Positions 1-60,377 of a stretch of 64,000 bases of DNA are shown in pieces; position 1 is the first letter of the stretch, and each line of letters starts with the position of its first letter. Below the pieces are notes generated by a model. It searched no databases. It was given only the letters and a program-made list of their open reading frames with translations, and was not told the DNA's origin. The stretch is taken from sequence record NC_031039.1; one strand, written 5' to 3'. Made by a program: the position numbers and the translations under genes.

Positions 1-55
1 CCCATTATTTTTCCCCATTTCTATTTAATATTTATATAGTTTTGTTTCTCAAATT

Positions 56-277
56 TTATAATTCTTTAAATAAAAGATAAAATAAAATAATAATGATTAT
101 TAAAATAATTCCAAAGGGAATGTATATAATAGGATCACTTAAATGAAGAATTGTGCTACTTTTATCATCTTCATAGAGGTAGTTAACAGGATGTGTAGGA
201 CTTAATAAATTATTTGGACTGGTAGGATTTAAAGGACTTGTTGGATTAGCAGGATTTAATTGACTAGATGGATTCAT
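56..277 (-). CDS. Small membrane protein with N-terminal NPxSP repeats
   Basis: SD AAGGAG precedes ATG at 277 (track start 313 lacks one); NPANPTSPLNPTSPNN repeats; C-terminal hydrophobic helix. Confidence 0.6.
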   Translation of the reverse strand: MNPSSQLNPANPTSPLNPTSPNNLLSPTHPVNYLYEDDKSSTILHLSDPIIYIPFGIILIIIIILFYLLFKEL

Positions 278-309
278 CTTATTCTCTCCTTTGTAGACAA
301 AAAATAAAA

Positions 310-337
310 ACATAAGAGACTTATAAGTCTCTTATGT
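310..337. terminator. Perfect 28-bp palindrome, terminator-like
   Basis: ACATAAGAGACTTATAAGTCTCTTATGT directly after the stop of the 342-1067 gene. Confidence 0.7.
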
Positions 338-341
338 CATT

Positions 342-1067
342 TTATACTGCTTTCTCTTCTGTTTCTGGTCTTTCTATAATTACATATGGAACGGCATTAA
401 ATCCTTTTTTCATTAGATTTTCATTAAAACCATCAATATCTTTATTGTTATAACCAGTTGATGGAATATAAATATCTACTTCTTCAAAACCATCATTACA
501 ATTTTCTACAATATCATTAATATTTGATAATTCATCTTCTACAATCATTTTTACATTCTTTAGATTCTTAATATAATCTGATTTCTTTTCATTTTTCCCA
601 ACAAAAATAATCTCTACTTTATTAGAATTTAAGAAAGTTTCAATAAATTTTCTTTTTCCTTCTTTGGTTCCTTCACTTGTTCTTGTTACAACATAGATTT
701 TATCTACGAATTTTTGTAATGATAATTTATAAATTCCTTCACACATTTTAGTTGGCATACAATCTTCATAAAATTCATCGTTATCATATAATGAATAAAA
801 TCTTTCAAATAATTCTTTTTCTTCTTTATCTGATAATACAAGATTTTCTTTTCTTAACCATTTATTTAAATGAAATTCTGGACGTGATAGTACTGTTTGA
901 TAATGTTCAAATGTACCAAATTCCAATCCTTCTAGTTTACTTAAATCAAAGTATTTTCCAAAATAATCAGCATTTTGCTGAATCTTATGAACCCATAAAG
1001 GACTAATGTCAGTTAATACCTCATCGCAGTCTGTAACAATTGAAAATGGTTCTTTAATAGAAAACAT
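342..1067 (-). CDS. HAD-superfamily 5'(3')-deoxyribonucleotidase-like phosphatase
   Basis: Motif I DCDEVLTD, motif II YVVTR, KSDY, motif IV IVEDELSN. Confidence 0.7.
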   Translation of the reverse strand: MFSIKEPFSIVTDCDEVLTDISPLWVHKIQQNADYFGKYFDLSKLEGLEFGTFEHYQTVLSRPEFHLNKWLRKENLVLSDKEEKELFERFYSLYDNDEFYEDCMPTKMCEGIYKLSLQKFVDKIYVVTRTSEGTKEGKRKFIETFLNSNKVEIIFVGKNEKKSDYIKNLKNVKMIVEDELSNINDIVENCNDGFEEVDIYIPSTGYNNKDIDGFNENLMKKGFNAVPYVIIERPETEEKAV

Positions 1068-1146
1068 TAAATCCTCTCCCTGTAATTATAATATGCACGA
1101 AGGAATATTAGAATAATACCATTATATTCTAATAATATAAATGCTT

Positions 1147-3099
1147 TTAGAATGTTAAGATATTGGTTGGAAATTGTGTCTGCTTAGTTGTTTCTAGTAT
1201 TTTAAATCCTAAAGATTCTAACATAATCATACCACTCTTAATATGGTCGTTAACCATCGTTTCAATATCAATAAATGGAGTAACCCACTCAGGTAATTTT
1301 TTGATTGATTTTGGTAGACACAGGATTGTAAAACCATGCTTAGAAAGATTTTCATTATCATAAATAGTTTCTTTAATGGTTTTATAGACATCCATTGGTA
1401 TTTTACCTGCTAAATCGTTTAAACTCTCAGTTGTCAATTTAATCAGATTTACTTTGGTAGGTAACACAATTTCATTATCAGGAAATAATTCATTCCAAAT
1501 AATAGTTCCTCTAATAGATTGCATTGCATAAGGATTAGCATATGATTCAATCTCATTAGCCTTGGAAGGAAGTGTATAAGTAATTTCTCCATTCATCAAT
1601 GAATTAGCAATTTCATTTTGTAAATGAACAAAGTTCCCAAATACTTTACTTAAATCAATTTTATCAGAAGATAAAATATTTTTATCCAGCATTTCAGTAA
1701 AGTAGTCTCTTACATTTTTGTTTACACTTACTTTTCTAATAGCTAAACCCTTAATATCAAGTTTAGGCTTTTCAAACATACGACCTTCTTGCATGATTAA
1801 TTTACCAGCATAACTTTTCTTATTACGAGTAAGCATTAGACGTTTATAGAAAAATTCATTTTTCATATTGATAATAGGACGTTTTTCAGAAGGAATATTT
1901 AGTTCAGATGTCATTTTCCAATAAACATTTTCAATTACCTTTGCCAATAAATATGATGCAATATTAACAACACTTACTTTACCTTCATCCGTCTCGTCTA
2001 CATTATCTGGGTAATTTTCTTTTAAGTATTTATAAAATGGATCTAACATTAAGAAGTTTGAGTCAGTATCTACTACTAATACTGTTTGTCTCTTTTCATT
2101 CTCTGCATTTTCATAACGATAGAAACTTAAATGATTATATAAAACCCATTCTTGAATATATGTCCATAACATTTCTAGTGAATCTTTAATATCTTTAGGT
2201 GGATCATTTGGATCTAAAAATTCTTTATTAATTACTTTTCCTAAAAGATTAGAGATCTCATTATTACCTAAGAATTCATAAAGATTATTTTTATAATAAA
2301 TTTTGTTAAGTGTTTGTTGATCCATTCTCTCAATAATATCTGAAAGAACCTTTACATCTGAATCATTTCTATTTCTCCATTTACGTAGGAGATATTGTAA
2401 TAATTCTCCGCTTTCAATATTTCTATTAATAATATGTGTATATACATATTTCTGTTCTTGAATGTTATTAATGTATAAAAGAACATCATTTAGATTTTCA
2501 AAGTGAAAGTTATTAGACATAAAATTCTCGAATGCATTTACAGCAGTCGTAATAATAATTACACCACTATATGTAATACTTGGACCAAAGTTTTGATTAA
2601 AGAAGATACTATTTTTCTCAACTGTTGCTCCATAAAATGAGTTAGCAAGAAGTTTAAAGGTTTTTTGCATTAAGTCTAGATTATTATATTCTGTTCTATC
2701 TTCATCATTAACATGCTCAAACATTTCTTTTTTTACTTTCTTACGTGATACCAGTAGATAATCAACCATATCAGAAAGTAAATTTACACCTTCATTATGT
2801 TTTCTATAGAATGCTCCGTAACCAGTAATTATTGGTTTCTTTTCTTCTAACCATTCAGTAACACTTAATAAATTTTTTACACTTTTTTGCTCACCATCGT
2901 TAAATACAACATTTTTACCCTGAATAGTACTATTAATTTCCTTGTCTAAGAATTCTTCAATCTCTTCTTCACTAATATTAGGAAATGAAAGAAGTAATTG
3001 TTTCTTTGCCTGTTCTTTATATTTTTCTAAGAAATTTGGATATGAATTTACATAATTTTTAGTTTCCTGCAAATTTTTCTCCTCCCAAGTATTTATCAA
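1147..3099 (-). CDS. Family B DNA polymerase, polymerase (fingers/palm/thumb) subunit of a split enzyme
   Basis: Motif B QKTFKLLANSFYG, motif C VDTDS, KKSYAG and KGLAIRK; no exonuclease motifs or motif A seen. Confidence 0.85.
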   Translation of the reverse strand: MINTWEEKNLQETKNYVNSYPNFLEKYKEQAKKQLLLSFPNISEEEIEEFLDKEINSTIQGKNVVFNDGEQKSVKNLLSVTEWLEEKKPIITGYGAFYRKHNEGVNLLSDMVDYLLVSRKKVKKEMFEHVNDEDRTEYNNLDLMQKTFKLLANSFYGATVEKNSIFFNQNFGPSITYSGVIIITTAVNAFENFMSNNFHFENLNDVLLYINNIQEQKYVYTHIINRNIESGELLQYLLRKWRNRNDSDVKVLSDIIERMDQQTLNKIYYKNNLYEFLGNNEISNLLGKVINKEFLDPNDPPKDIKDSLEMLWTYIQEWVLYNHLSFYRYENAENEKRQTVLVVDTDSNFLMLDPFYKYLKENYPDNVDETDEGKVSVVNIASYLLAKVIENVYWKMTSELNIPSEKRPIINMKNEFFYKRLMLTRNKKSYAGKLIMQEGRMFEKPKLDIKGLAIRKVSVNKNVRDYFTEMLDKNILSSDKIDLSKVFGNFVHLQNEIANSLMNGEITYTLPSKANEIESYANPYAMQSIRGTIIWNELFPDNEIVLPTKVNLIKLTTESLNDLAGKIPMDVYKTIKETIYDNENLSKHGFTILCLPKSIKKLPEWVTPFIDIETMVNDHIKSGMIMLESLGFKILETTKQTQFPTNILTF

Positions 3100-3259
3100 T
3101 TTTTAGTTATCATTTCTCTTAAAAATATCTAAGATTAAAAATAACTAATCAATATAATAATATATTTTTAAAAAGAGTTTTATTTAAACAATTAAATATA
3201 AAAGTATTTATTTCAAATAAACATTAAATTATATTAATCTGAAAGGAAAGTGATTTTCA

Positions 3260-3559
3260 ATGTCATCATTCTTCAACTTACTCACTGAGTCAAATACTAG
3301 TGATATTATTCTTGAGCAAACTTTTCAAGAAGCTAACGTAGTTCGTATGGATAAACAAACTCTTAAAAAACGTTTGCTTACTCAGGCTACACTATTAGCG
3401 GCTAAAGATGCTAACGATCCAATTTATCAAAAATATGTTAAAGCGGCTAAACAAAAACGCCATTTCCGTTCTCAAATTCAACAAAAATATGGTGCTAAAG
3501 GTCAAGCTAAAGTCCGTGAGTTCCTTAAACAGCAACAACAAGCTAAACAAGCTCGTTAA
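3260..3559 (+). CDS. Late small basic protein, probably virion head-associated
   Basis: Two AACA-N6-TA motifs upstream (3187, 3220); LLTE/ILE propeptide-like N-terminus; basic C-terminus. Confidence 0.5.
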   Translation: MSSFFNLLTESNTSDIILEQTFQEANVVRMDKQTLKKRLLTQATLLAAKDANDPIYQKYVKAAKQKRHFRSQIQQKYGAKGQAKVREFLKQQQQAKQAR

Positions 3560-3638
3560 TTTTCGGATCATAGAAATATGAATGAGAAAGATTACTATTA
3601 ATGTAATCAGATTTGAAAGTGAAGAATAATTTTAAATT

Positions 3639-3670
3639 ATCCTTAAGATCTTATTAAAGATCTTAAGGAT
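3639..3670 (+). terminator. Intrinsic terminator-like hairpin
   Basis: ATCCTTAAGATCTT-atta-AAGATCTTAAGGAT. Confidence 0.65.
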
Positions 3671-3737
3671 ACTTATATACCGTTTACATATAATACTTAG
3701 TTATTTTTAAGATATTAAAAAACATAAAAAGTGATGT

Positions 3738-3750
3738 AAATATATATTAT
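3738..3750 (+). promoter_or_regulatory. Phage early-type promoter AAATATATATTAT (representative copy)
   Basis: Exact 13-mer in intergenic gaps at 3738(+), 15406(+), 16414(+), 28049(-), 40214(+), 57705(+); variants at 9388(+) and 3157(-); core resembles phiKZ early TATATTAC. Confidence 0.75.
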
Positions 3751-3804
3751 TAACTTGTATTTTTCCATGTTTCATGTTATAATTAATCAACGGAGGGATC
3801 ATCA

Positions 3805-5700
3805 TTGGAAAAGACTTATAATTTAAATGATATTCTATTATCAAATGAGTATGAAAAAATTAAAGAGGATATCAAGGAAGAAATAATTAATGATATGGCA
3901 TCTAAGAAAGTAAAGTATAGTAATACTTCTGAATTTGCTAAAAATGACTTTCTTAAAGATGAATTCATTGATTTAGTTGTTGATGGGGAAACATATGAAA
4001 TTACATATGGAAATCTAATCACATTATTAATTGTTGCAAGACCATTTAATCACTTTAAAGTACCAATGACTGAAGATTTATTATTTGATCTATCTGATTT
4101 AAAAGAATACCAAAATTATTATACTACATTGCTGGAACATTTTGGTTACAGTAATGAAATTAAATCCATTATTAAAGATGTTATTAGTGAGTTAGCAATT
4201 TTCTCTGGGGATATTAATGTAACATTTGGTAATACAGTTTCTATTAAATCACTTATTGACTTGGGAAATAAAGTAAAGAGATTTAGAGAATTATTACATT
4301 ATCGTTTACCAAATGATGAAGCATTGGAGTTTAATGATATTGAGGCTATTATTAAAAAGAATTTAGATGAAATTATGAAAATTCTTTCTGAAACTGATAA
4401 TATGCTAAGATATTATATTGATTCAGGTGCTGGTATTAACTCAAAACAATTTGGTCAAGTATTATCATTAGTAGGTTCTAAACCGGATTTATTTGGTAAA
4501 ATTATTCCTTATCCAATTAATACTAGTTTCCTAAGAGGATTAGATGTACGGTCTTTCTATATTAATGCTTTAGGGGCAAGAAAAGCTTTAATCACAAACT
4601 ATCAACAAGTAAGAAACTCTGGCTATCTAACAAGAAAAATTAGTATGTTATTGATGGATACAAAATTAATTGATTTAGATGATTGTGGAAGCCATGAAAA
4701 CAACTATCTTTCAATTAATGTTGAGAATAAAGATGTTCTAAAAAGATTCTCTAAAAGAAGTTATTTAAATAATAATGGTGAATTAGTTGAAATTGATATT
4801 AATGATGAAAGTCTAATTGGACAGGTAATAAAAATTCCTTCTCCAACTACTTGTGCATCTAATGAAGGCGTTTGTCGTAAATGTTATGGTAAATTGTTTG
4901 ATATCAATAAAGATTTAAATATTGGCATGATTGCAGTTCTACTATTAACAGATCCATTAACTCAGCGTTTATTAAGTGCAAAACACTTACTAGAGACTCG
5001 GTCTTCTAAGATCGATTGGGGAACTAATTTTGAAGAGAACTTTATCGTAAACAGAAACTTAATTTATCCTAAAGTTTATAATGGAACGGTTATTATTAAA
5101 GAAGATGATTTTAAAGAAGATGAGGAAACAGAAGAACAAGTATTTGATACATTTACTTTAAAAAGTGGTAATAGATTTATTTCTATTAGTTCACCAATGA
5201 GATTATTCCTAAATAAAGACCTTAAGAAACAACTTGATGAAAGCTTTTATAATATAGAAGAAATGCAATTTGAAATTCCATTAAATAAGCTTGATGAAGG
5301 CGATAGTTTTGCAACATTCATCATGGATAATAACGAATTATCAAAACCATTAAGGGAAATTAAAGATCTTATTGAAACTAATAAATATATTAAAGATCAT
5401 AATGTTAATGAAGTGGTAAACTATTTTATTTACCTCTTAAATGAATCAGGTATCAATATTCAGTCTGTTCATTCAGAGTTAATCATTAGAGAAATGATGA
5501 AACTAGATGATTCAGATAGAACACAATTTAAAAATGATAAAATGCCGGATTATGAAATCTTCCGTATTACAGATGCTAATTTAAAGGGAGATAGTCTATC
5601 AAGATCATTATTATTTGAGCAAGTTAAGAAACAGCTAACTACACTAGATTATGATACATTTAATAAAACAAAATCTTCAATTTTAGATAAACTACTTTAA
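3805..5700 (+). CDS. rpoC: Phage multisubunit RNA polymerase beta' subunit, C-terminal half (probably non-virion RNAP)
   Basis: Bridge helix QQVRNSGYLTRK..DLDDCG, Zn motif PTTC-x6-CRKCYG, trigger loop IGMIAV..TDPLTQRLLSAKH; TTG start after GGAGG; early-type promoter. Confidence 0.9.
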   Translation: MEKTYNLNDILLSNEYEKIKEDIKEEIINDMASKKVKYSNTSEFAKNDFLKDEFIDLVVDGETYEITYGNLITLLIVARPFNHFKVPMTEDLLFDLSDLKEYQNYYTTLLEHFGYSNEIKSIIKDVISELAIFSGDINVTFGNTVSIKSLIDLGNKVKRFRELLHYRLPNDEALEFNDIEAIIKKNLDEIMKILSETDNMLRYYIDSGAGINSKQFGQVLSLVGSKPDLFGKIIPYPINTSFLRGLDVRSFYINALGARKALITNYQQVRNSGYLTRKISMLLMDTKLIDLDDCGSHENNYLSINVENKDVLKRFSKRSYLNNNGELVEIDINDESLIGQVIKIPSPTTCASNEGVCRKCYGKLFDINKDLNIGMIAVLLLTDPLTQRLLSAKHLLETRSSKIDWGTNFEENFIVNRNLIYPKVYNGTVIIKEDDFKEDEETEEQVFDTFTLKSGNRFISISSPMRLFLNKDLKKQLDESFYNIEEMQFEIPLNKLDEGDSFATFIMDNNELSKPLREIKDLIETNKYIKDHNVNEVVNYFIYLLNESGINIQSVHSELIIREMMKLDDSDRTQFKNDKMPDYEIFRITDANLKGDSLSRSLLFEQVKKQLTTLDYDTFNKTKSSILDKLL

Positions 5701-23331: not shown

Positions 23332-25099
23332 TTTTTTTTGTATACTCAAAGACTAAATTTCCACAATCCCAAATTCTATCATAACCAGCTTCTCTCATAA
23401 TTTGAATTTCTGTTTTATCATTACTATAAATTTCTGGAAATAATTCTTTTAATCTTTGTTTTCTATAGTTGTATCTATGTGAAAGACTCAATTTATTTTT
23501 ATTAAAATACCAATAATTTGGCTGAGAGTTATGCATAAAGTGAAAGCTATTTTTATGATATACATTTCCTTCTGACCATCTTAAATCAGCATATGTTATG
23601 ATTTTATTCCAATCATAATTCTTTTTAAAATAACTGAATAATTTTCCAAAACTACCTATTACATTATAGTCTCTTTCTGTAGCAAATCTACTTAATTCAT
23701 AGTCATATTTATTCCCTTTTTGCCCTAAGCTAACTCTAGGTTTACAGAATGTCATTACTGCTACTAACTCATCACCCTCATTCCTTGGATACCATAGTCC
23801 TAGTTTAATAGTAGAGTTATCAGATCCTTGAATATGATTTTTATCTAAAAAATCTCTTTTCACATTATTCTGAATTTCTTCTATATAACATTTTCTAGCA
23901 TATATTTTTTCTCCATTATTTAAACCTAAAATATGTTTTATCTTTCCCTTTATAAGTTCTTTATTATCAATCCACTCATTCTCAAATAAATGAATTAATC
24001 TTATACCCTTTTCATTACATTTTTTCAATTTATTTAAATGGTAGTTTCTATCTTTTCCTTGAGATTCACCATGCCAATATAAACCGTTATATTCAATTGC
24101 TATTTTCTTTGAAGGTATATAAATATCCAGTTCTAAACCTTCAAGTATTTTTCTGTCTGATAGAATTACATTAGTGCTATTGGGGAGAATTTGTTTAATA
24201 TAATCATATAATTCAATCTCATCTTTTGAATTATGTTTCTTTAGTTGACATCTGGGACAATCTCTTTTAACTTTTTTACCTCTTGAATTACCATGTAAAA
24301 TATCGACCGGTCTAACCTCCCAAGAATAACCACATGAATGCTCAATAACTATTGGAGTTTTATTATTAATATATCTACTCTTAATTGTATAATCATTACT
24401 ATTAAATATTCTATAAAAATCTTCTTTAAAACCATTAGATCCTTTATTTTTTGGTTTTTTATTACATATATTACACCTTTTTCTTTTTAGGAAATTAGTT
24501 GGTGTAATAAAGAAATTATGAGAATCACTAGTATTGTGTCTCATCTCAATTTTATCTTGAGAGCTAATATATTCTCCTAATACAGTATATTCATCTCCTA
24601 CTAAATCATATACTTCTTTAATAAACATTTCAGTAGTCTTTGTCTTTTTCCTTTTTATTAGTTTCTTAGTACAATCAGGACATCTTGAACCCTTACTGAG
24701 AAAGTCATTAGGTCTTTTTTTAAATTCCTTATTACAGATGTTATGTCTAAGTAATACTAGTTTAGAACTATTAATATATTCTCCTAATACAGTATATTCA
24801 TCCCCTACTAAATCATACACTTCTTTAATAAACATTTCAGTAGTCTTATTTTTTCTTTTAGATATTCTCTCTGATTTATGTAAAGGACATCTATTACCTG
24901 CATTTAAAAAGCCATTTGGTGTGACATAGTATTCATGACTGCATTTTTCATGTTTCATTTTTATTTTATTATTAGTTCCAGTATATTCTCCTAATACAGT
25001 ATATTCATCCCCTACTAATTCATACACTTCTTTAATAAACATTTCAGTAGTCTTCTTTTTAGGCAAAACAATCATCCTTTTATATAAATTGGATTTCAA
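23327..25099 (-). CDS. Free-standing homing endonuclease-like protein (zinc-ribbon repeats + PD-(D/E)xK + Hef-like C-terminus)
   Basis: Repeats KTTEMFIKEVY.LVGDEYTVLGEY..H..C...RCP.C; ELDIYIPSKKIAIEYNGLYWH; C-terminal YELSRFA..YADLRWS..IWDCG. Confidence 0.75.
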   Translation of the reverse strand: MKSNLYKRMIVLPKKKTTEMFIKEVYELVGDEYTVLGEYTGTNNKIKMKHEKCSHEYYVTPNGFLNAGNRCPLHKSERISKRKNKTTEMFIKEVYDLVGDEYTVLGEYINSSKLVLLRHNICNKEFKKRPNDFLSKGSRCPDCTKKLIKRKKTKTTEMFIKEVYDLVGDEYTVLGEYISSQDKIEMRHNTSDSHNFFITPTNFLKRKRCNICNKKPKNKGSNGFKEDFYRIFNSNDYTIKSRYINNKTPIVIEHSCGYSWEVRPVDILHGNSRGKKVKRDCPRCQLKKHNSKDEIELYDYIKQILPNSTNVILSDRKILEGLELDIYIPSKKIAIEYNGLYWHGESQGKDRNYHLNKLKKCNEKGIRLIHLFENEWIDNKELIKGKIKHILGLNNGEKIYARKCYIEEIQNNVKRDFLDKNHIQGSDNSTIKLGLWYPRNEGDELVAVMTFCKPRVSLGQKGNKYDYELSRFATERDYNVIGSFGKLFSYFKKNYDWNKIITYADLRWSEGNVYHKNSFHFMHNSQPNYWYFNKNKLSLSHRYNYRKQRLKELFPEIYSNDKTEIQIMREAGYDRIWDCGNLVFEYTKKK

Positions 25100-53092: not shown

Positions 53093-53132
53093 AAAACGAT
53101 AAATCATATTATATAATATGATTTATCGTTTT
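53093..53132. terminator. Bidirectional terminator (perfect 40-bp palindrome)
   Basis: AAAACGATAAATCATATTATATAATATGATTTATCGTTTT between convergent genes. Confidence 0.8.
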
Positions 53133-56708: not shown

Positions 56709-57641
56709 CTATTTAAAGAATTTAAGTTTAAATGATGTCTTTGGATGTAGAGAATCATTTTCATAAGGATCAGTTTTAACAACAAGAACTTTAGTTGCTT
56801 TCACATTAGATTCAGTAAAGTTATAAGGTAATAAATCATTCGTTGTATAGGGAATAACACCTTTATTAGAACCTTCAGTTGAATATCTTAACGCTTCAGA
56901 ATCTAATGTTGCTACTTTATTAAAGTCCATAAGGATTGCTGGATCTAGATCTTCTTTGAACGAGTAACTATATTCTACTGATATTTCTGGAATATCATGA
57001 TCCTTGCCATCAGTTGCTAGGTTAGCATAGGGAACTGAAATAGGAACTGCACCAGTATATTTAGAGAAATATAAAATAGTCTCACCATCAAAATCTAAAA
57101 GAAAGTAGTAAATTGAACTCACATAGTCTAAATATCTCTTTTTTATAGCATCTTTTGAAGGTGAAAATGTACCACGTCTTACATTTTCAGTATATTCTAC
57201 CCATGCCTTATGTAACTTAATAATGGGTAGACTTTTATATTCCTCAAATTTAACAGTAGTAGTATCACCAACTAGACTATCTACAAGTGAAATTGGTAAA
57301 GTTTGTTTATATCCATAGAATGTTTCTCCAACATCAATTGTCCTTGCCGCTAAATCCTTACCATCCATTCCTCTAAATGCATTTGTTAAAATTTTAATAA
57401 ATGGACTAACTGTTTTTCCATTAGTAGTTAGTGCATTAAAAAGATCAGGTTCTAATGTTTCTAAATACATTAGAAAACTATCTCTTCGAGTGTTAAGTTT
57501 ATCTAGATTTAATTTTGGTGTAGTAATAAAAATGTATGGTATACCTTTTACTAATACATCATGATCTTTTGGATCTCCTCTTCTATATACATCATATTCT
57601 TTGATTATATCAATATGAGGATATAAGTTGAACTCAGACAT
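56709..57641 (-). CDS. Tail tube-like/baseplate hub protein
   Basis: GETFYG...T.V.F.E......LHKAWVEY pattern of the gp19/gp54 fold; late promoter at 57668. Confidence 0.5.
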   Translation of the reverse strand: MSEFNLYPHIDIIKEYDVYRRGDPKDHDVLVKGIPYIFITTPKLNLDKLNTRRDSFLMYLETLEPDLFNALTTNGKTVSPFIKILTNAFRGMDGKDLAARTIDVGETFYGYKQTLPISLVDSLVGDTTTVKFEEYKSLPIIKLHKAWVEYTENVRRGTFSPSKDAIKKRYLDYVSSIYYFLLDFDGETILYFSKYTGAVPISVPYANLATDGKDHDIPEISVEYSYSFKEDLDPAILMDFNKVATLDSEALRYSTEGSNKGVIPYTTNDLLPYNFTESNVKATKVLVVKTDPYENDSLHPKTSFKLKFFK

Positions 57642-57721
57642 TTATAAACCTCCTAAAAGCGAATCTTTATTTAATTGTTCTAAGTAAAAGAAAACTCATT
57701 TTTCAAATATATATTATAAGA

Positions 57722-57985
57722 ATGTTGAAGTAAGTAAATATCAGAGTATATAGACCTTAATAAATCTCTAAATAGGAAGCATACAACCACCTTGATGACG
57801 CTTCCGCTTCTTCAACATATAAAGATGGAGGAAGATAAACTCATGTTTAAGGCATTAAGAACAGTATTGTCAATCATTGGATTACAATAAATTGGGAACC
57901 CTAAAACTAGGTTTATATACTATAACGCCATTAGCGATTAAGTTCGCTAATGGCAAATAGGTGGTTATATTTTTTTATTTTTTTC
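57722..57985 (+). ncRNA. Candidate structured RNA with two long-range (pseudoknot) pairings
   Basis: Early promoter at 57705; stems 57722-30/57810-18, 57775-80/57800-05, 57927-37/57944-54; long-range pairs 57746-57/57909-20 and 57785-92/57959-66; poly-U end. Confidence 0.55.
57843..57890 (+). CDS. 15-aa amphipathic peptide MFKALRTVLSIIGLQ
   Basis: GGAGG at 57827-31, ATG 57843, TAA 57888-90; translation unproven. Confidence 0.4.
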   Translation: MFKALRTVLSIIGLQ

Positions 57986-58064
57986 TTTTCCTCCTTTGTT
58001 AACAAATAATTAATGCTAAATAAATATCATTTAATAATGATAGAAAGGAAAGGTTGAGAAACGA

Positions 58065-60377
58065 ATGGATATTAATACACTAATGAATTTTATCTCTGCT
58101 TTCGGTTTCGGAAAAGATTTAAATAAAGATAAATCACCGAGAACTAAAGATTGGGAGACTGCGGCTGAAATTCTTGGCGCTACAGCTACTGCAAGAAGAG
58201 GTAGTATTAAATATAGAGCAAAAGATTTAATTGCTCACTATCCTGTTTTATTTTCTGATAATCTTACTTCTCATTCAGTACAGCTTGTAAATCGTGCATT
58301 AGAACATGAATATGTAAATATGTTAAAGCTACTTATTCAAAATGATGGTGCAGACGGTTTTGAAAATACTGCATCATATTTAAAAGGATACCATCAAAAT
58401 ATTAGTCATGATGCAAATCTTGATTCTCATTTATCTAAAAGTACAGATGAACTAGAAAGAAGATTTTCAGAGTCTGTAATTACTGAAAATGATTTAAGAG
58501 ATGCTAATAAAAAATTACTTGAAAGTTTTAGTGATGATTTAAACCTTCAAGTATTAAATGATTCTACTGTTAGTAAAGAATATAAAAATTTATTAGAAGA
58601 TAAAAAAGATGATTCAAATAACAAAAAAGTTGAAAAAGAATTATCTGCAAAACCAAAAATTGATAATACAGAAATTAAAAAAGCAAATGAATTAACTCCA
58701 ACTAATGTTTCTGTGGATATTGATTATGAAACTAATAATGGAACAGTTCATAAGACCATTTCATTTGGAGTTAAATGTGTTGCTCACCTTCTTGATTCTC
58801 AAGATATCGAGTATTTTCTCCCAAATGCTGTAATTACTAAAACACCAATCATGCGTATGATTCAATGGACATCAGGGGAGATTAAATTCTTTAAAGATTT
58901 CTTATTTTCTATTGATGAAATTAAAAGAACTGCTGTTAAATCAAATGATAAAAATAGCTTCTGGTGGAGAAAACTACAAACAATCTCAAAAGTAGCTCAT
59001 GCTCGTCCTTCTTTATTTGCATTAAGTAAAGGAAGAAAACTAGGGAAAGCTCCTATTCCTACCTCTACAATGGTAATCAGTAAAGAAAATGTAGACAATA
59101 TTCGTCATAAACATGGTATTGATCTTCTTGCAAAACCTTCATTCGTTAAAAAGATTATGAAGAATTTCTTCTTAATGACTTTTATCATTGTTGATGAAAG
59201 TATTGAAACGGTATATATCTTTAATGAAGATACCAGCGATTTCAGTCATTATTCTTTCAGATCATTAGAAGGTTTCTCAAAACAAAAAAATATTGATATA
59301 AAAGATATTTATAGTCTTTTAAAATAAAAGAGGTGAGTATATATGTTTTTTGAAAAGAAAACCACTCTATTAGAACAAAATGATGAATTTTTAGGTGGAA
59401 TTCTTATTCGTGAAGATAGCGAATGGAGTAAGTACAAAATTCAAAGTTTAGCTGAAGATATTAAATCTGATGTTACAGACCGTGTTGTCACAAACTTATT
59501 TAGTGACATTAAATCAAAAGCACTTAGTGTTGATTTCGCTATAGTTGATAAGTCAAAGGGTGATATCACTCGCCTAGCTAATTACAATACTATTTCTAAT
59601 GCTATTTCCTTTATTAAAAAAGGAGTTAGTGGACAAAGTGATGACGCTCAAATTGTCAAAGCTGTGAGTCAGCTTGAATTCACTTTAAATACTCTTATTA
59701 AATATAAAAAAGATTTTCAGCGTGGATTTATGTTAAATGATTCAATTACTCGTTACCTGTATAATTCTATCGTTATTGCTATTATTCAAGGAACTTCCTA
59801 TTTGGTTTCAGAGACTGTCCAGCTAACAAAAGATAATCTAAATTTGTATAATGTCACTTATAGAGATTCCAAAGAAATCTTTAATAACAATCACATTAAA
59901 TCAATCTCAGTATTTAATCAATTGGAACGAAAAGGTCAGCTGGTTAAGTTATTTAAAGAATCACATAACTTGGCTGAAAATACTTTAATCAACATTGGTA
60001 AAGATGTATTGAAGCGCCTATCTGATCTTGGTGGAGTTACTAAGTGGATTGCAATTCTTGGTTTAATTGGATTTTCTTTGACCTTTATTAGAAGTATTAT
60101 TTTCTTGTATTTCAATTCAAGAGTTAAATTATCTCAGTATCTTACACATTTAAAAGATTTTGTTGAAATGAATTCATCAACTCTTGAACATGATGCTAAA
60201 AAAGTAAGAGAACGTCAAGAAAAAATTGCTCAAGCTCTTGGAAAATTATCTGATCGAATTCGAGTTGACCAAAACGTAGCAAATGACAGAGCAAATAGTC
60301 AAATTGAAGAATCAAATAAAATTATTGCTATTGATAACAGCCCATCTAATAATAGCACTAGTTTAGATTTATATTAA
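58065..60377 (+). CDS. Two late head-associated virion proteins (58065-59327, 59343-60377)
   Basis: Late promoter at 58001; LLE/ITE/IRE putative protease sites. Confidence 0.55.

Follow-up and report, generated by a model that had tools for sequence, protein, structure and literature searches.

A predicted double-pseudoknot early RNA with a 15-codon open reading frame in Bacillus phage AR9 and related jumbo phages

Results

An early transcription unit between two late genes

The sequence analyzed here (the window) is a 64,000-nucleotide stretch of record NC_031039.1, from Bacillus phage AR9 (KU878088), in which window positions equal AR9 positions minus 124000. Two late genes, g213 (56709 to 57641, minus strand; annotated as "virion protein") and g214 (58065 to 59327, plus strand; a minor virion structural protein), diverge from a 423-nt gap that houses an early RNA. 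Homologs of g213 contain Pfam domain PF23971 (Phage_TTP_15) and are tail-tube-like, and late transcription start sites (TSSs) have been reported at 57669/70 (minus strand) and 58012 (plus strand) (Table S3 in Lavysh 2017, PMC5312081).

We found no long open reading frame (ORF) in the 423-nt gap, in agreement with an earlier note made from the sequence alone, and the early promoter that the note placed at 57705 to 57717 on the plus strand (AAATATATATTAT, used by the virion RNA polymerase [RNAP] and labeled "early promoter" in GenBank) is an exact match to the published AR9 early consensus, AAATATATATTAT-(6N)-G (Lavysh 2017, PMC5312081). This promoter has been described as P214 (AR9 181705 to 181717), and dRNA-seq placed its TSS at a G at AR9 181724 (window 57724), with a step height of 264 and a TEX enrichment of 3.87, the top value among all early promoters (PMC5312081). 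TSSPredator filed the TSS under g214 with a 340-nt untranslated region (UTR), the longest in the early table (PMC5312081). The promoter and TSS are therefore known already, and the transcript is there misassigned to g214; the RNA's own Shine-Dalgarno (SD) sequence, ORF, T-run, and conserved structured unit are not described in that study (Lavysh 2017, PMC5312081).

The assignment to g214 fits poorly with expression of the gene itself, which is silent at 5 min: it stands at 0.69 RPKM, compared with 17 to 3,900 for early genes, and we conclude from this that the early RNA ends before g214. The presumed termination site is a T-run (T7-A-T7, 57970 to 57984, plus strand) that corresponds to the poly-U tract of the earlier note and is conserved in position in all relatives described below. 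Downstream of the T-run, and outside the early RNA, lies the late promoter of g214, AACAAATAATTA (58001 to 58012, plus strand; TSS at 58012, AR9 182012 in Table S3 of Lavysh 2017), a motif present in 13 of 16 sequences. The whole early transcript, from TSS to T-run (57724 to 57984, plus strand), would be ~250 to 260 nt long, its 3′ end being predicted rather than mapped. Against this, the TSSPredator assignment supports the literature view of a long g214 5′ UTR; with g214 silent at 5 min and served by its own conserved late promoter past the T-run, we regard that view as very unlikely, and we judge a variant of it, a leader-peptide attenuator controlling early read-through, in the same way below.

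The unit is conserved among AR9-like jumbo phages

We sought relatives through the protein of the neighboring tail-tube-like gene, g213, and the search was thus independent of the RNA sequence. This gave, among the matches listed, 14 contigs from metagenomic and SRA assemblies, which have g213 identities of 51 to 74% and five of which are of jumbo-phage size (198 to 275 kb); the element is present in every one of these contigs. Together with AR9 and BpSp (KT895374), which carries the orthologous gap, the sample has 16 sequences. An early promoter with 6N-G, an SD, and an ORF lie between the g213 and g214 homologs in 14 of the 15 relatives; the fifteenth, contig L015, has an A at the start position and stops before g214, and the promoter motif with its 6N-G is accordingly kept in 15 of 16 sequences. 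The distance from TSS to T-run is 237 to 258 nt in 14 sequences (12 of the 14 contigs and BpSp among them), with an ~80-nt insertion in contig L028 and a length of 398 nt in L015, the most distant; full-length alignment was possible for 14 sequences. As predicted from these comparisons, the RNA is a family common to AR9-like jumbo phages.

A covariance model of the family identifies 57724 to 57982 in the window (211 bits, E 3e-34) as a single copy, and gives no paralog in a further 113 kb of AR9 (1 to 50000 and 188001 to 251042); by blastn, the AR9 record has a single matching place. Over 1,701 nt, AR9 is separated from phage Goe21 by 7 sites and from phage Internexus by 3, all of them outside the gap. 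Scanning IMG/VR for the DNA pattern TATATACTN{0,1}TAACGYCATTAG returned only AR9 and chance matches inside the coding regions of unrelated phages, and a protein-guided scan of GTDB genomes returned no relative.

The covariance model has no match in Staphylococcus phage Madawaska or in other relatives of ~45% identity. In Madawaska and two contigs (L016 and L006), where g213 is only 43 to 45% identical, the same slot is also occupied by promoters of the early type, followed by long leaders and by small ORFs coding for 42 to 169 amino acids. These have no sequence relationship to the AR9 unit, and ordinary terminators close the units of Madawaska and L016. Because the slot also holds these unrelated early units, its role as an "early island" predates the AR9 RNA family. 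That distant relatives have here an ORF of 44 to 52 amino acids followed by a canonical terminator is a further argument against a g214 UTR.

Five helices are maintained by compensatory changes

The AR9 RNA has a predicted folding energy of −65.4 kcal/mol (z = −4.05 relative to shuffles) and a fold of five helices (all plus strand). P1 starts at +1, and its 5′ strand (57724 to 57734; GTTGAAG, a bulged T, and AAG) pairs with a 3′ strand at 57807 to 57816 (CTT-CTTCAAC). The earlier note had drawn this 5′ stem as 57722 to 57730 with 57810 to 57818; the stem is present, its transcribed part is the P1 core (57724 to 57730 with 57810 to 57816), which covaries, and an AAG/CTT extension pairs 57732 to 57734 with 57807 to 57809. 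Enclosed by P1 is the P2 hairpin (57775 to 57805), with a GGAAGC/GCTTCC stem in AR9 (57775 to 57780 with 57800 to 57805) whose sequence varies widely among relatives. Junction J2 (57758 to 57774), containing a conserved TAATAAA, has conserved columns and a possible contact with the loop of P5. The P5 hairpin (57927 to 57954; stem 57927 to 57937 with 57944 to 57954) has a conserved hexaloop, TTAAGT; it was previously described as an 11-bp GC hairpin, and while the 11 bp hold, only 6 of the 11 are G+C.

Two loops of the 5′ domain were also said to be complementary to distant 3′ segments, and both pairings hold. For the first, PK1, the proposal of 57746 to 57757 with 57909 to 57920 extends to 13 bp with one G.U in AR9, and joins AGTATATAGACCT (57745 to 57757), which lies in the internal loop separating P1 from P2, to AGGTTTATATACT (57909 to 57921), a segment located 15 to 23 nt past the stop codon across the family. 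For the second, PK2, 11 of 12 positions pair in AR9 as proposed (57781 to 57792 with 57959 to 57970); the conserved core, which covaries, is 8 bp between AACCACCT in the P2 loop (57785 to 57792) and AGGTGGTT between P5 and the T-run (57959 to 57966).

Covariation among relatives had been suggested as a check on this structure, and it was found for all five helices in the 14-sequence alignment. Of the cells in a plain MAFFT alignment (A3, 14 sequences), 86.6% are paired, compared with 38 to 41% when partners are slid by 1 to 3 columns, and 32 of 48 pairs show changes on both sides, compared with 10 to 15 when slid; none of 500 shuffles reached these values. A second alignment (A5) was derived from a covariance model (R1) built on P1, P2, and P5 only, with PK1 and PK2 unmodelled, and here 90.7% of cells are paired (~39% when slid) and both partners have changed in 32 of 47 pairs. 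On this covariance-model alignment, P1 has 85.7% of cells paired (both partners changed in 6 of 10 pairs), PK1 has 95.2%, with compensatory changes in 8 of 12 pairs on this and the MAFFT alignment alike, and PK2 has 94.6% (5 of 8 pairs compensatory); for P5 the values are 99.4% and 8 of 11. RNAalifold recovered PK2 and P5 unaided from the MAFFT alignment, and the top four helices in an unguided all-against-all scan of the same plain alignment were P5, PK1, PK2, and P1.

We also used an alignment-free swapped-partner test, in which each 5′ strand is paired with the 3′ strand of every sequence. Cognate partners are favored over swapped ones for P1 (−11.9 versus −6.8 kcal/mol), P2 (−11.8 versus −6.4, with the cognate first in 13 of 15), PK1 (−16.1 versus −10.9), PK2 (−12.9 versus −10.7), and P5 (−17.8 versus −8.3), with 0 of 20,000 for each helix, and the cross-controls (PK1 5′ with PK2 3′, and PK2 5′ with PK1 3′) gave no signal in this test. 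Among the pairs, G.U outnumbers A.C by 45 to 21, which favors the plus-strand RNA. Comparative evidence thus strongly supports the prediction that P1, P2, P5, PK1, and PK2 are all kept by compensatory changes.

The paired segments occur in the order a...b...a′...b′, PK2 together with P2 forming an H-type pseudoknot, and because of this order PK1 crosses PK2 and each of the two also crosses P1. Since all three cross, their coexistence in one molecule is beyond the reach of covariation, with which alternative states or pairing between molecules could also be compatible. An oligomerizing RNA, one of the ideas of the earlier note, would form the crossing helices between molecules, giving dimers or rings as in phi29 pRNA; mutual crossing of P1, PK1, and PK2 is topologically easier in trans, and covariation is blind to cis versus trans pairing. 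The a...b...a′...b′ order and long flexible linkers nonetheless permit an intramolecular H-type arrangement, the packaging genes have no link to the RNA, none of our findings argues for oligomers in particular, and a phi29-type pRNA was rejected, there being no Rfam pRNA match and a conserved coding ORF, which would be unexpected in a pRNA; we consider oligomerization extremely unlikely.

A conserved micro-ORF is predicted to be translated

The GGAGG and short ORF recognized previously are both present and conserved in relatives. In AR9 the SD (57827 to 57831, plus strand) is 11 nt upstream of the ATG, with an A-rich linker preceding, and the micro-ORF, MFKALRTVLSIIGLQ, consists of 15 codons and a stop codon (57843 to 57890, plus strand). 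All 16 sequences have an SD (GGAGG, GGGGG, or GGAG) 7 to 11 nt 5′ of the start codon, which is ATG in 13 and TTG in 3, and an ORF of 14 to 17 codons occupies the same place in 15 of them (19 codons in L015). Conservation is at the amino acid level: the BLOSUM62 score per residue is +1.37 in frame, compared with −0.87 and −0.52 in the other frames, which are rich in stops, and with −0.38 ± 0.24 in a column-permuted null (0 of 1,000), and Leu, Ser, and Arg are each maintained via both of their codon families. This is strong comparative evidence that the micro-ORF is a gene, and we predict that it is translated.

The peptide consensus is M-x-K-L-h-x-x-h-h-x-h-h-S-(L/Y)-polar (where h is a hydrophobic residue), with a net charge of +1 to +3. 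It was originally proposed to be amphipathic, a description that we reject because the helical hydrophobic moment is not above that of shuffles in most members (0.41 in AR9 versus 0.27 ± 0.12); a basic N terminus with a hydrophobic core is the better description. No well-studied membrane peptide is as short as this one, which counts against the explanation that we favor below.

Leu, Ile, and Val are abundant in the peptide, which would suit an I/L/V-rich leader peptide controlling early read-through, and the order of promoter, short ORF, hairpin with T-run, and gene looks attenuator-like. Yet K3 and S13 are conserved by position, and not as codon runs alone, and the all-against-all scan gave no conserved alternative (antiterminator) helix, so that we find attenuation as hard to credit as the g214 UTR itself.

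Translation control and the 3′ end

The 3′ strand of P2 is pyrimidine-rich and anti-SD-like, and able to pair with the SD, and the 5′ strand resembles an SD; in the main fold the anti-SD-like strand is held within P2. The translation initiation region (TIR; SD plus start codon) can also pair with sequence past the stop codon, strongly in 8 of 14 sequences and weakly in AR9, where the SD is unpaired with a probability of 0.42 in the isolated linker, and this pairing has energies of −7.9 kcal/mol for cognate and −6.0 for swapped partners (14 of 20,000). SD sequestration is therefore inconsistent across the family, which also counts against our favored explanation. A further anti-SD pairing in the earlier note, of GGAGGAAGA with UUUUCCUCC (57986 to 57994), was not sustained: it lies beyond the T-run, is absent from all relatives, and is specific to AR9.

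Canonical AR9 early terminators have a long hairpin abutting the T-run. The 3′ arrangement of the AR9 RNA is atypical, because P5 sits 15 nt from the T-run with the PK2 3′ strand in between, and from this position PK2 may take part in 3′-end formation. Across the family the PK2 3′ strand lies 1 to 8 nt upstream of the T-run, and up to 12 nt when counted from its G+C-rich core; spacing that ranges from 1 to 12 nt weakens the case for a direct role of PK2 in termination.

These features bear on the suggestion that the transcript is a type I toxin-like mRNA, in which a 5′–3′ interaction would stabilize or control the mRNA of a membrane-toxic peptide acting in host shut-off or superinfection exclusion. 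In T1TAdb, type I toxin mRNAs are 150 to 400 nt long and code for toxins of 20 to 60 amino acids that are usually hydrophobic, the antitoxin is a cognate antisense RNA of 60 to 200 nt, and the primary transcript has a 5′ stem, a 3′ terminator stem-loop, a 5′–3′ long-distance interaction, and an SD sequestered by an anti-SD (PMC8594479). The AR9 RNA resembles these descriptors in being a short mRNA (~250 to 260 nt, with a predicted 3′ end) for a hydrophobic cationic peptide, and in having P1 as a 5′ stem at +1 and P5 as a 3′ stem-loop followed by the T-run, with PK1 and PK2 as long-distance 5′–3′ pairings. The pairing that would sequester the TIR speaks for the proposal in 8 of 14 members and is weak in AR9; translation of the timP toxin mRNA is controlled by a pseudoknot (PMC11228461). 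What does not fit is the peptide, which at 14 to 17 amino acids (19 in L015) falls below the toxin range and lacks the length needed for a transmembrane helix, and the antitoxin: Tables S2 and S3 of Lavysh 2017 contain no minus-strand TSS within 57724 to 57984 (PMC5312081), and we found no antisense RNA, although one encoded in trans at another genomic site could still serve. A lone late-promoter-like motif on the minus strand (AACATGAGTTTA, 57836 to 57847) was rejected as an antisense promoter: it depends on ATGTT, is AR9-specific, and occurs at chance level, the motif not being enriched. The open A-rich linker and strong consensus of the AR9 SD also suggest efficient rather than repressed translation. 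Of the toxin-like proposal, a short mRNA with 5′–3′ pairings stands, and membership in the type I toxins, which the peptide length and the antisense search oppose, does not; we consider it improbable overall.

Selection on unpaired nucleotides

Four-fold degenerate sites of g213 are saturated, and their 36% pairwise identity serves as a neutral reference. Paired columns of the RNA have 66% pairwise identity and the ORF 48%, and conservation is highest, at 72%, in those 3′-domain columns that are unpaired, which belong to the P5 loop (UUNNKU) and the junctions. The P5 loop and J2 are complementary (CUUAA with UUAAG) in 85.7% of cells, with a single compensatory change, and because there is just one, a kissing contact between them stays a candidate. 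The conserved unpaired nucleotides of P5 and the junctions suggest that there is a further contact, either tertiary or with a protein, and the RNA may therefore have a second role of its own; a function at the RNA level accounts for them no less well than mRNA stability alone would.

The main rival to our favored explanation starts from these nucleotides and takes the folded RNA itself as the effector (regulatory, decoy, protein-binding, or exonuclease-resistant), with the micro-ORF secondary, for example as a loop opener or folding timer. Stabilizing an mRNA does not usually take as much as five covarying helices in a compact, pseudoknotted arrangement, unpaired P5 loop and junction nucleotides stand at twice the neutral identity, the P5 loop is complementary to J2, and the TEX enrichment is the highest among early transcripts. 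Set against this are selection on the ORF at the amino acid level with a strong SD in every sequence, the lack of a known target or partner, the absence of an Rfam match, and the fact that no long conserved single-stranded seed, or conserved unstructured seed region of any kind, is evident in the RNA. We regard an RNA effector as possible but doubtful.

No match to a described RNA family

The earlier note recognized no known RNA family, and an Rfam search bears this out: no family reached its gathering score, the best being CyaR on the minus strand (27.5 versus 47 bits), and we discount this and the other sub-threshold matches (the S15 leader among them) as being at chance level. ARAGORN reported zero tRNA or tmRNA genes in 57500 to 58200, and a tmRNA or tRNA-like identity was rejected on this result, the lack of an Rfam match, and the ORF's own SD and start codon. 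Full-text literature searches on AR9, PBS1, Takahashivirus, and jumbo-phage non-coding RNAs returned no description of the transcript. With no match in Rfam or the searchable literature, we rate the pseudoknotted early RNA as a new RNA family.

Discussion

The explanation we favor, with somewhat more confidence than doubt, is that this locus codes for a self-contained early micro-mRNA in which a clamp holds the 3′ UTR against the 5′ domain and would control stability, 3′-end formation, and translation of the peptide. The virion RNAP would start at 57724 and make an RNA of ~250 nt ending at the T-run (57970 to 57984), before the g214 late promoter. A 5′ domain closed by P1 and enclosing P2 would offer two single-stranded segments that capture the 3′ UTR; PK1 (13 bp) and PK2 (8 bp, in the P2 loop) would tie the 3′ end to the 5′ end, with P5 between the 3′ segments, and the double pseudoknot would leave a loop of ~90 nt containing the strong SD and the 15-codon ORF, translated into a tiny hydrophobic, cationic peptide. 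We propose that the clamp shields both RNA ends from Bacillus subtilis exonucleases, helps to fix the 3′ end, and governs the timing and amount of ORF translation, with P2 keeping the anti-SD strand occupied. The peptide may work early in infection, as the host is taken over, with the membrane or a host protein as its target.

We also offer, tentatively and as a rather unlikely extension, that folded RNA and micropeptide act jointly as a new class of phage takeover module. For example, the double-pseudoknot ring could resist both 5′–3′ and 3′–5′ host exonucleases (like an xrRNA, and against RNase J1) or sequester a host factor by way of the invariant P5 loop, and the same RNA could be a closed-loop template that yields a 15-amino-acid effector.

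A published but misassigned start site here becomes a defined, conserved gene, and the early program of AR9/PBS1 gains a predicted 15-amino-acid protein. With TSS data and strong covariation, the RNA counts as one of the better-supported structured RNAs of a jumbo phage, and we found no family with the same architecture, a 3′ UTR fastened to the 5′ domain by a pair of covarying pseudoknot helices that enclose an ORF loop. The RNA provides an entry to the stabilization and termination of early mRNAs made by a virion-packaged multisubunit RNAP, to how very small proteins work, and to how coding and structure share one RNA; a pseudoknot-dependent 3′-end signal for the virion RNAP would, if true, be new.

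Compared with the published annotation (Lavysh 2017, PMC5312081), the promoter and TSS are the same, and the AR9 transcript described here does not reach g214 at 5 min. The RNA shares with hok and aapA1/aapA3 (PMC8594479), and with the timP mRNA pseudoknot (PMC11228461), a short structured mRNA coding for a small hydrophobic peptide, a 5′ terminal stem, a 3′ stem-loop, long-distance 5′–3′ pairing, and folding that could govern ribosome access. Unlike type I mRNAs, it has a peptide below the 20- to 60-amino-acid range, no antitoxin RNA that we could find, two independent long-range helices rather than one, inconsistent SD sequestration, and a lytic phage context.

The pRNA of phi29, the packaging RNA of a B. 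subtilis phage, is a non-coding RNA of 174 nt that forms intermolecular loop-loop pairs of 4 nt; it is located at the end of the genome and has the connector as its binding partner. Both are early structured RNAs of Bacillus phages in which loops pair with distant complementary segments; the AR9 RNA differs in its conserved ORF and in having no match to the Rfam pRNA.

Dual-function small RNAs offer a further comparison, and one of these is SR1/SR1P of B. subtilis. Another is Spot 42, which codes for the 15-amino-acid SpfP (PMC8916003). The AR9 RNA is like them in having its own promoter and a terminator (here presumably the T-run), and in combining a defined structure with a very short ORF (15 amino acids also in Spot 42), which in AR9 is predicted to be translated on comparative evidence. 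It has no sequence or structural homology to either, and it is unlike both in being phage-encoded, made early by the virion RNAP, and without a known base-pairing target, and in having its ORF enclosed by a predicted double pseudoknot that joins the 5′ and 3′ UTRs.

Divergent members of the RNA family

Two of the metagenomic and SRA-assembly contigs carry divergent versions of the early RNA. The L028 element (reverse complement of 1979-2500) retains the 5' stem P1, the long-range pseudoknot helices PK1 and PK2, the hairpins P2 and P5, and a 15-aa ORF, with an additional hairpin region of ~80 nt inserted after the ORF and before the PK1 3' strand. The L015 element (reverse complement of 1-504) retains the promoter, a 9-bp 5' stem, the Shine-Dalgarno (SD) sequence and a 19-aa hydrophobic ORF, and its 3' part is longer and unlike that of the rest of the family.

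The PK2 5' strand (57785-57792) reads AACCACCU in AR9, while two relatives have AAUCACCC; it is similar to the 3' end of 16S rRNA (...AUCACCUCC), and the PK2 3' strand (57959-57966), AGGUGGUU, is similar to the extended Gram-positive SD; an SD-like sequence is also present in the P2 5' strand. These likenesses may be a coincidence in an A+T-rich genome, or they may hint at a ribosome interaction.

Other sites in AR9

Elsewhere in the window, a late-promoter-like 12-mer, AACATTTCAGTA, is present in three identical copies at 24624, 24831, and 25038, and their spacing of exactly 207 nt points to a tandem repeat with a 207-nt unit at 24624-25049. A perfect A/T-rich palindrome at 53093-53132 (18 bp with a 4-nt loop) has a terminator-like score on both strands and is probably a bidirectional terminator. 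Outside the window, g283 (AR9 246121-246306; L031 8121-8306) is annotated as a 61-aa 'hypothetical protein' gene; its read densities are 116547, 1018650, and 283868 at 5, 20, and 40 min, the top values of the genome by a wide margin and at least 30-fold over any other protein-coding gene in the part of the table covered (Table S4 of Lavysh 2017, PMC5312081). We note that g283 may be an abundant stable RNA, or contain one.

The g213-g214 gap and its neighbors

Thirteen of the 16 sequences carry the late promoter of g214, AACAAATAATTA (58001-58012 in AR9, with its TSS at 58012), which has the same position in the relatives. It sits shortly 3' of the early-RNA T-run, and the presumed early terminator and the late promoter thus lie back to back. 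On the other side of the gap, leftward-transcribed g213 (56709-57641) is annotated simply as 'virion protein'; since Pfam family PF23971 (Phage_TTP_15) is present in all of its homologues, g213 is likely the tail tube protein or a relative thereof.

Other small ORFs occupy the homologous gap in distant relatives: ORFs of 42, 169, and 52 aa in Staphylococcus phage Madawaska (4137-5872), a 44-aa ORF upstream of position 3001 in L016, and one of ~50 aa in L006 (2486-2775). AR9-type early promoters precede the small ORFs in Madawaska and L016, and a structured leader of ~270 nt lies before the ORF in L016 and in the last Madawaska unit, where there is also possible complementarity between the 5'UTR and 3'UTR (GAGTGAGTT / AACTCACTC). 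The g213-g214 slot is a conserved 'early island' amid late genes.
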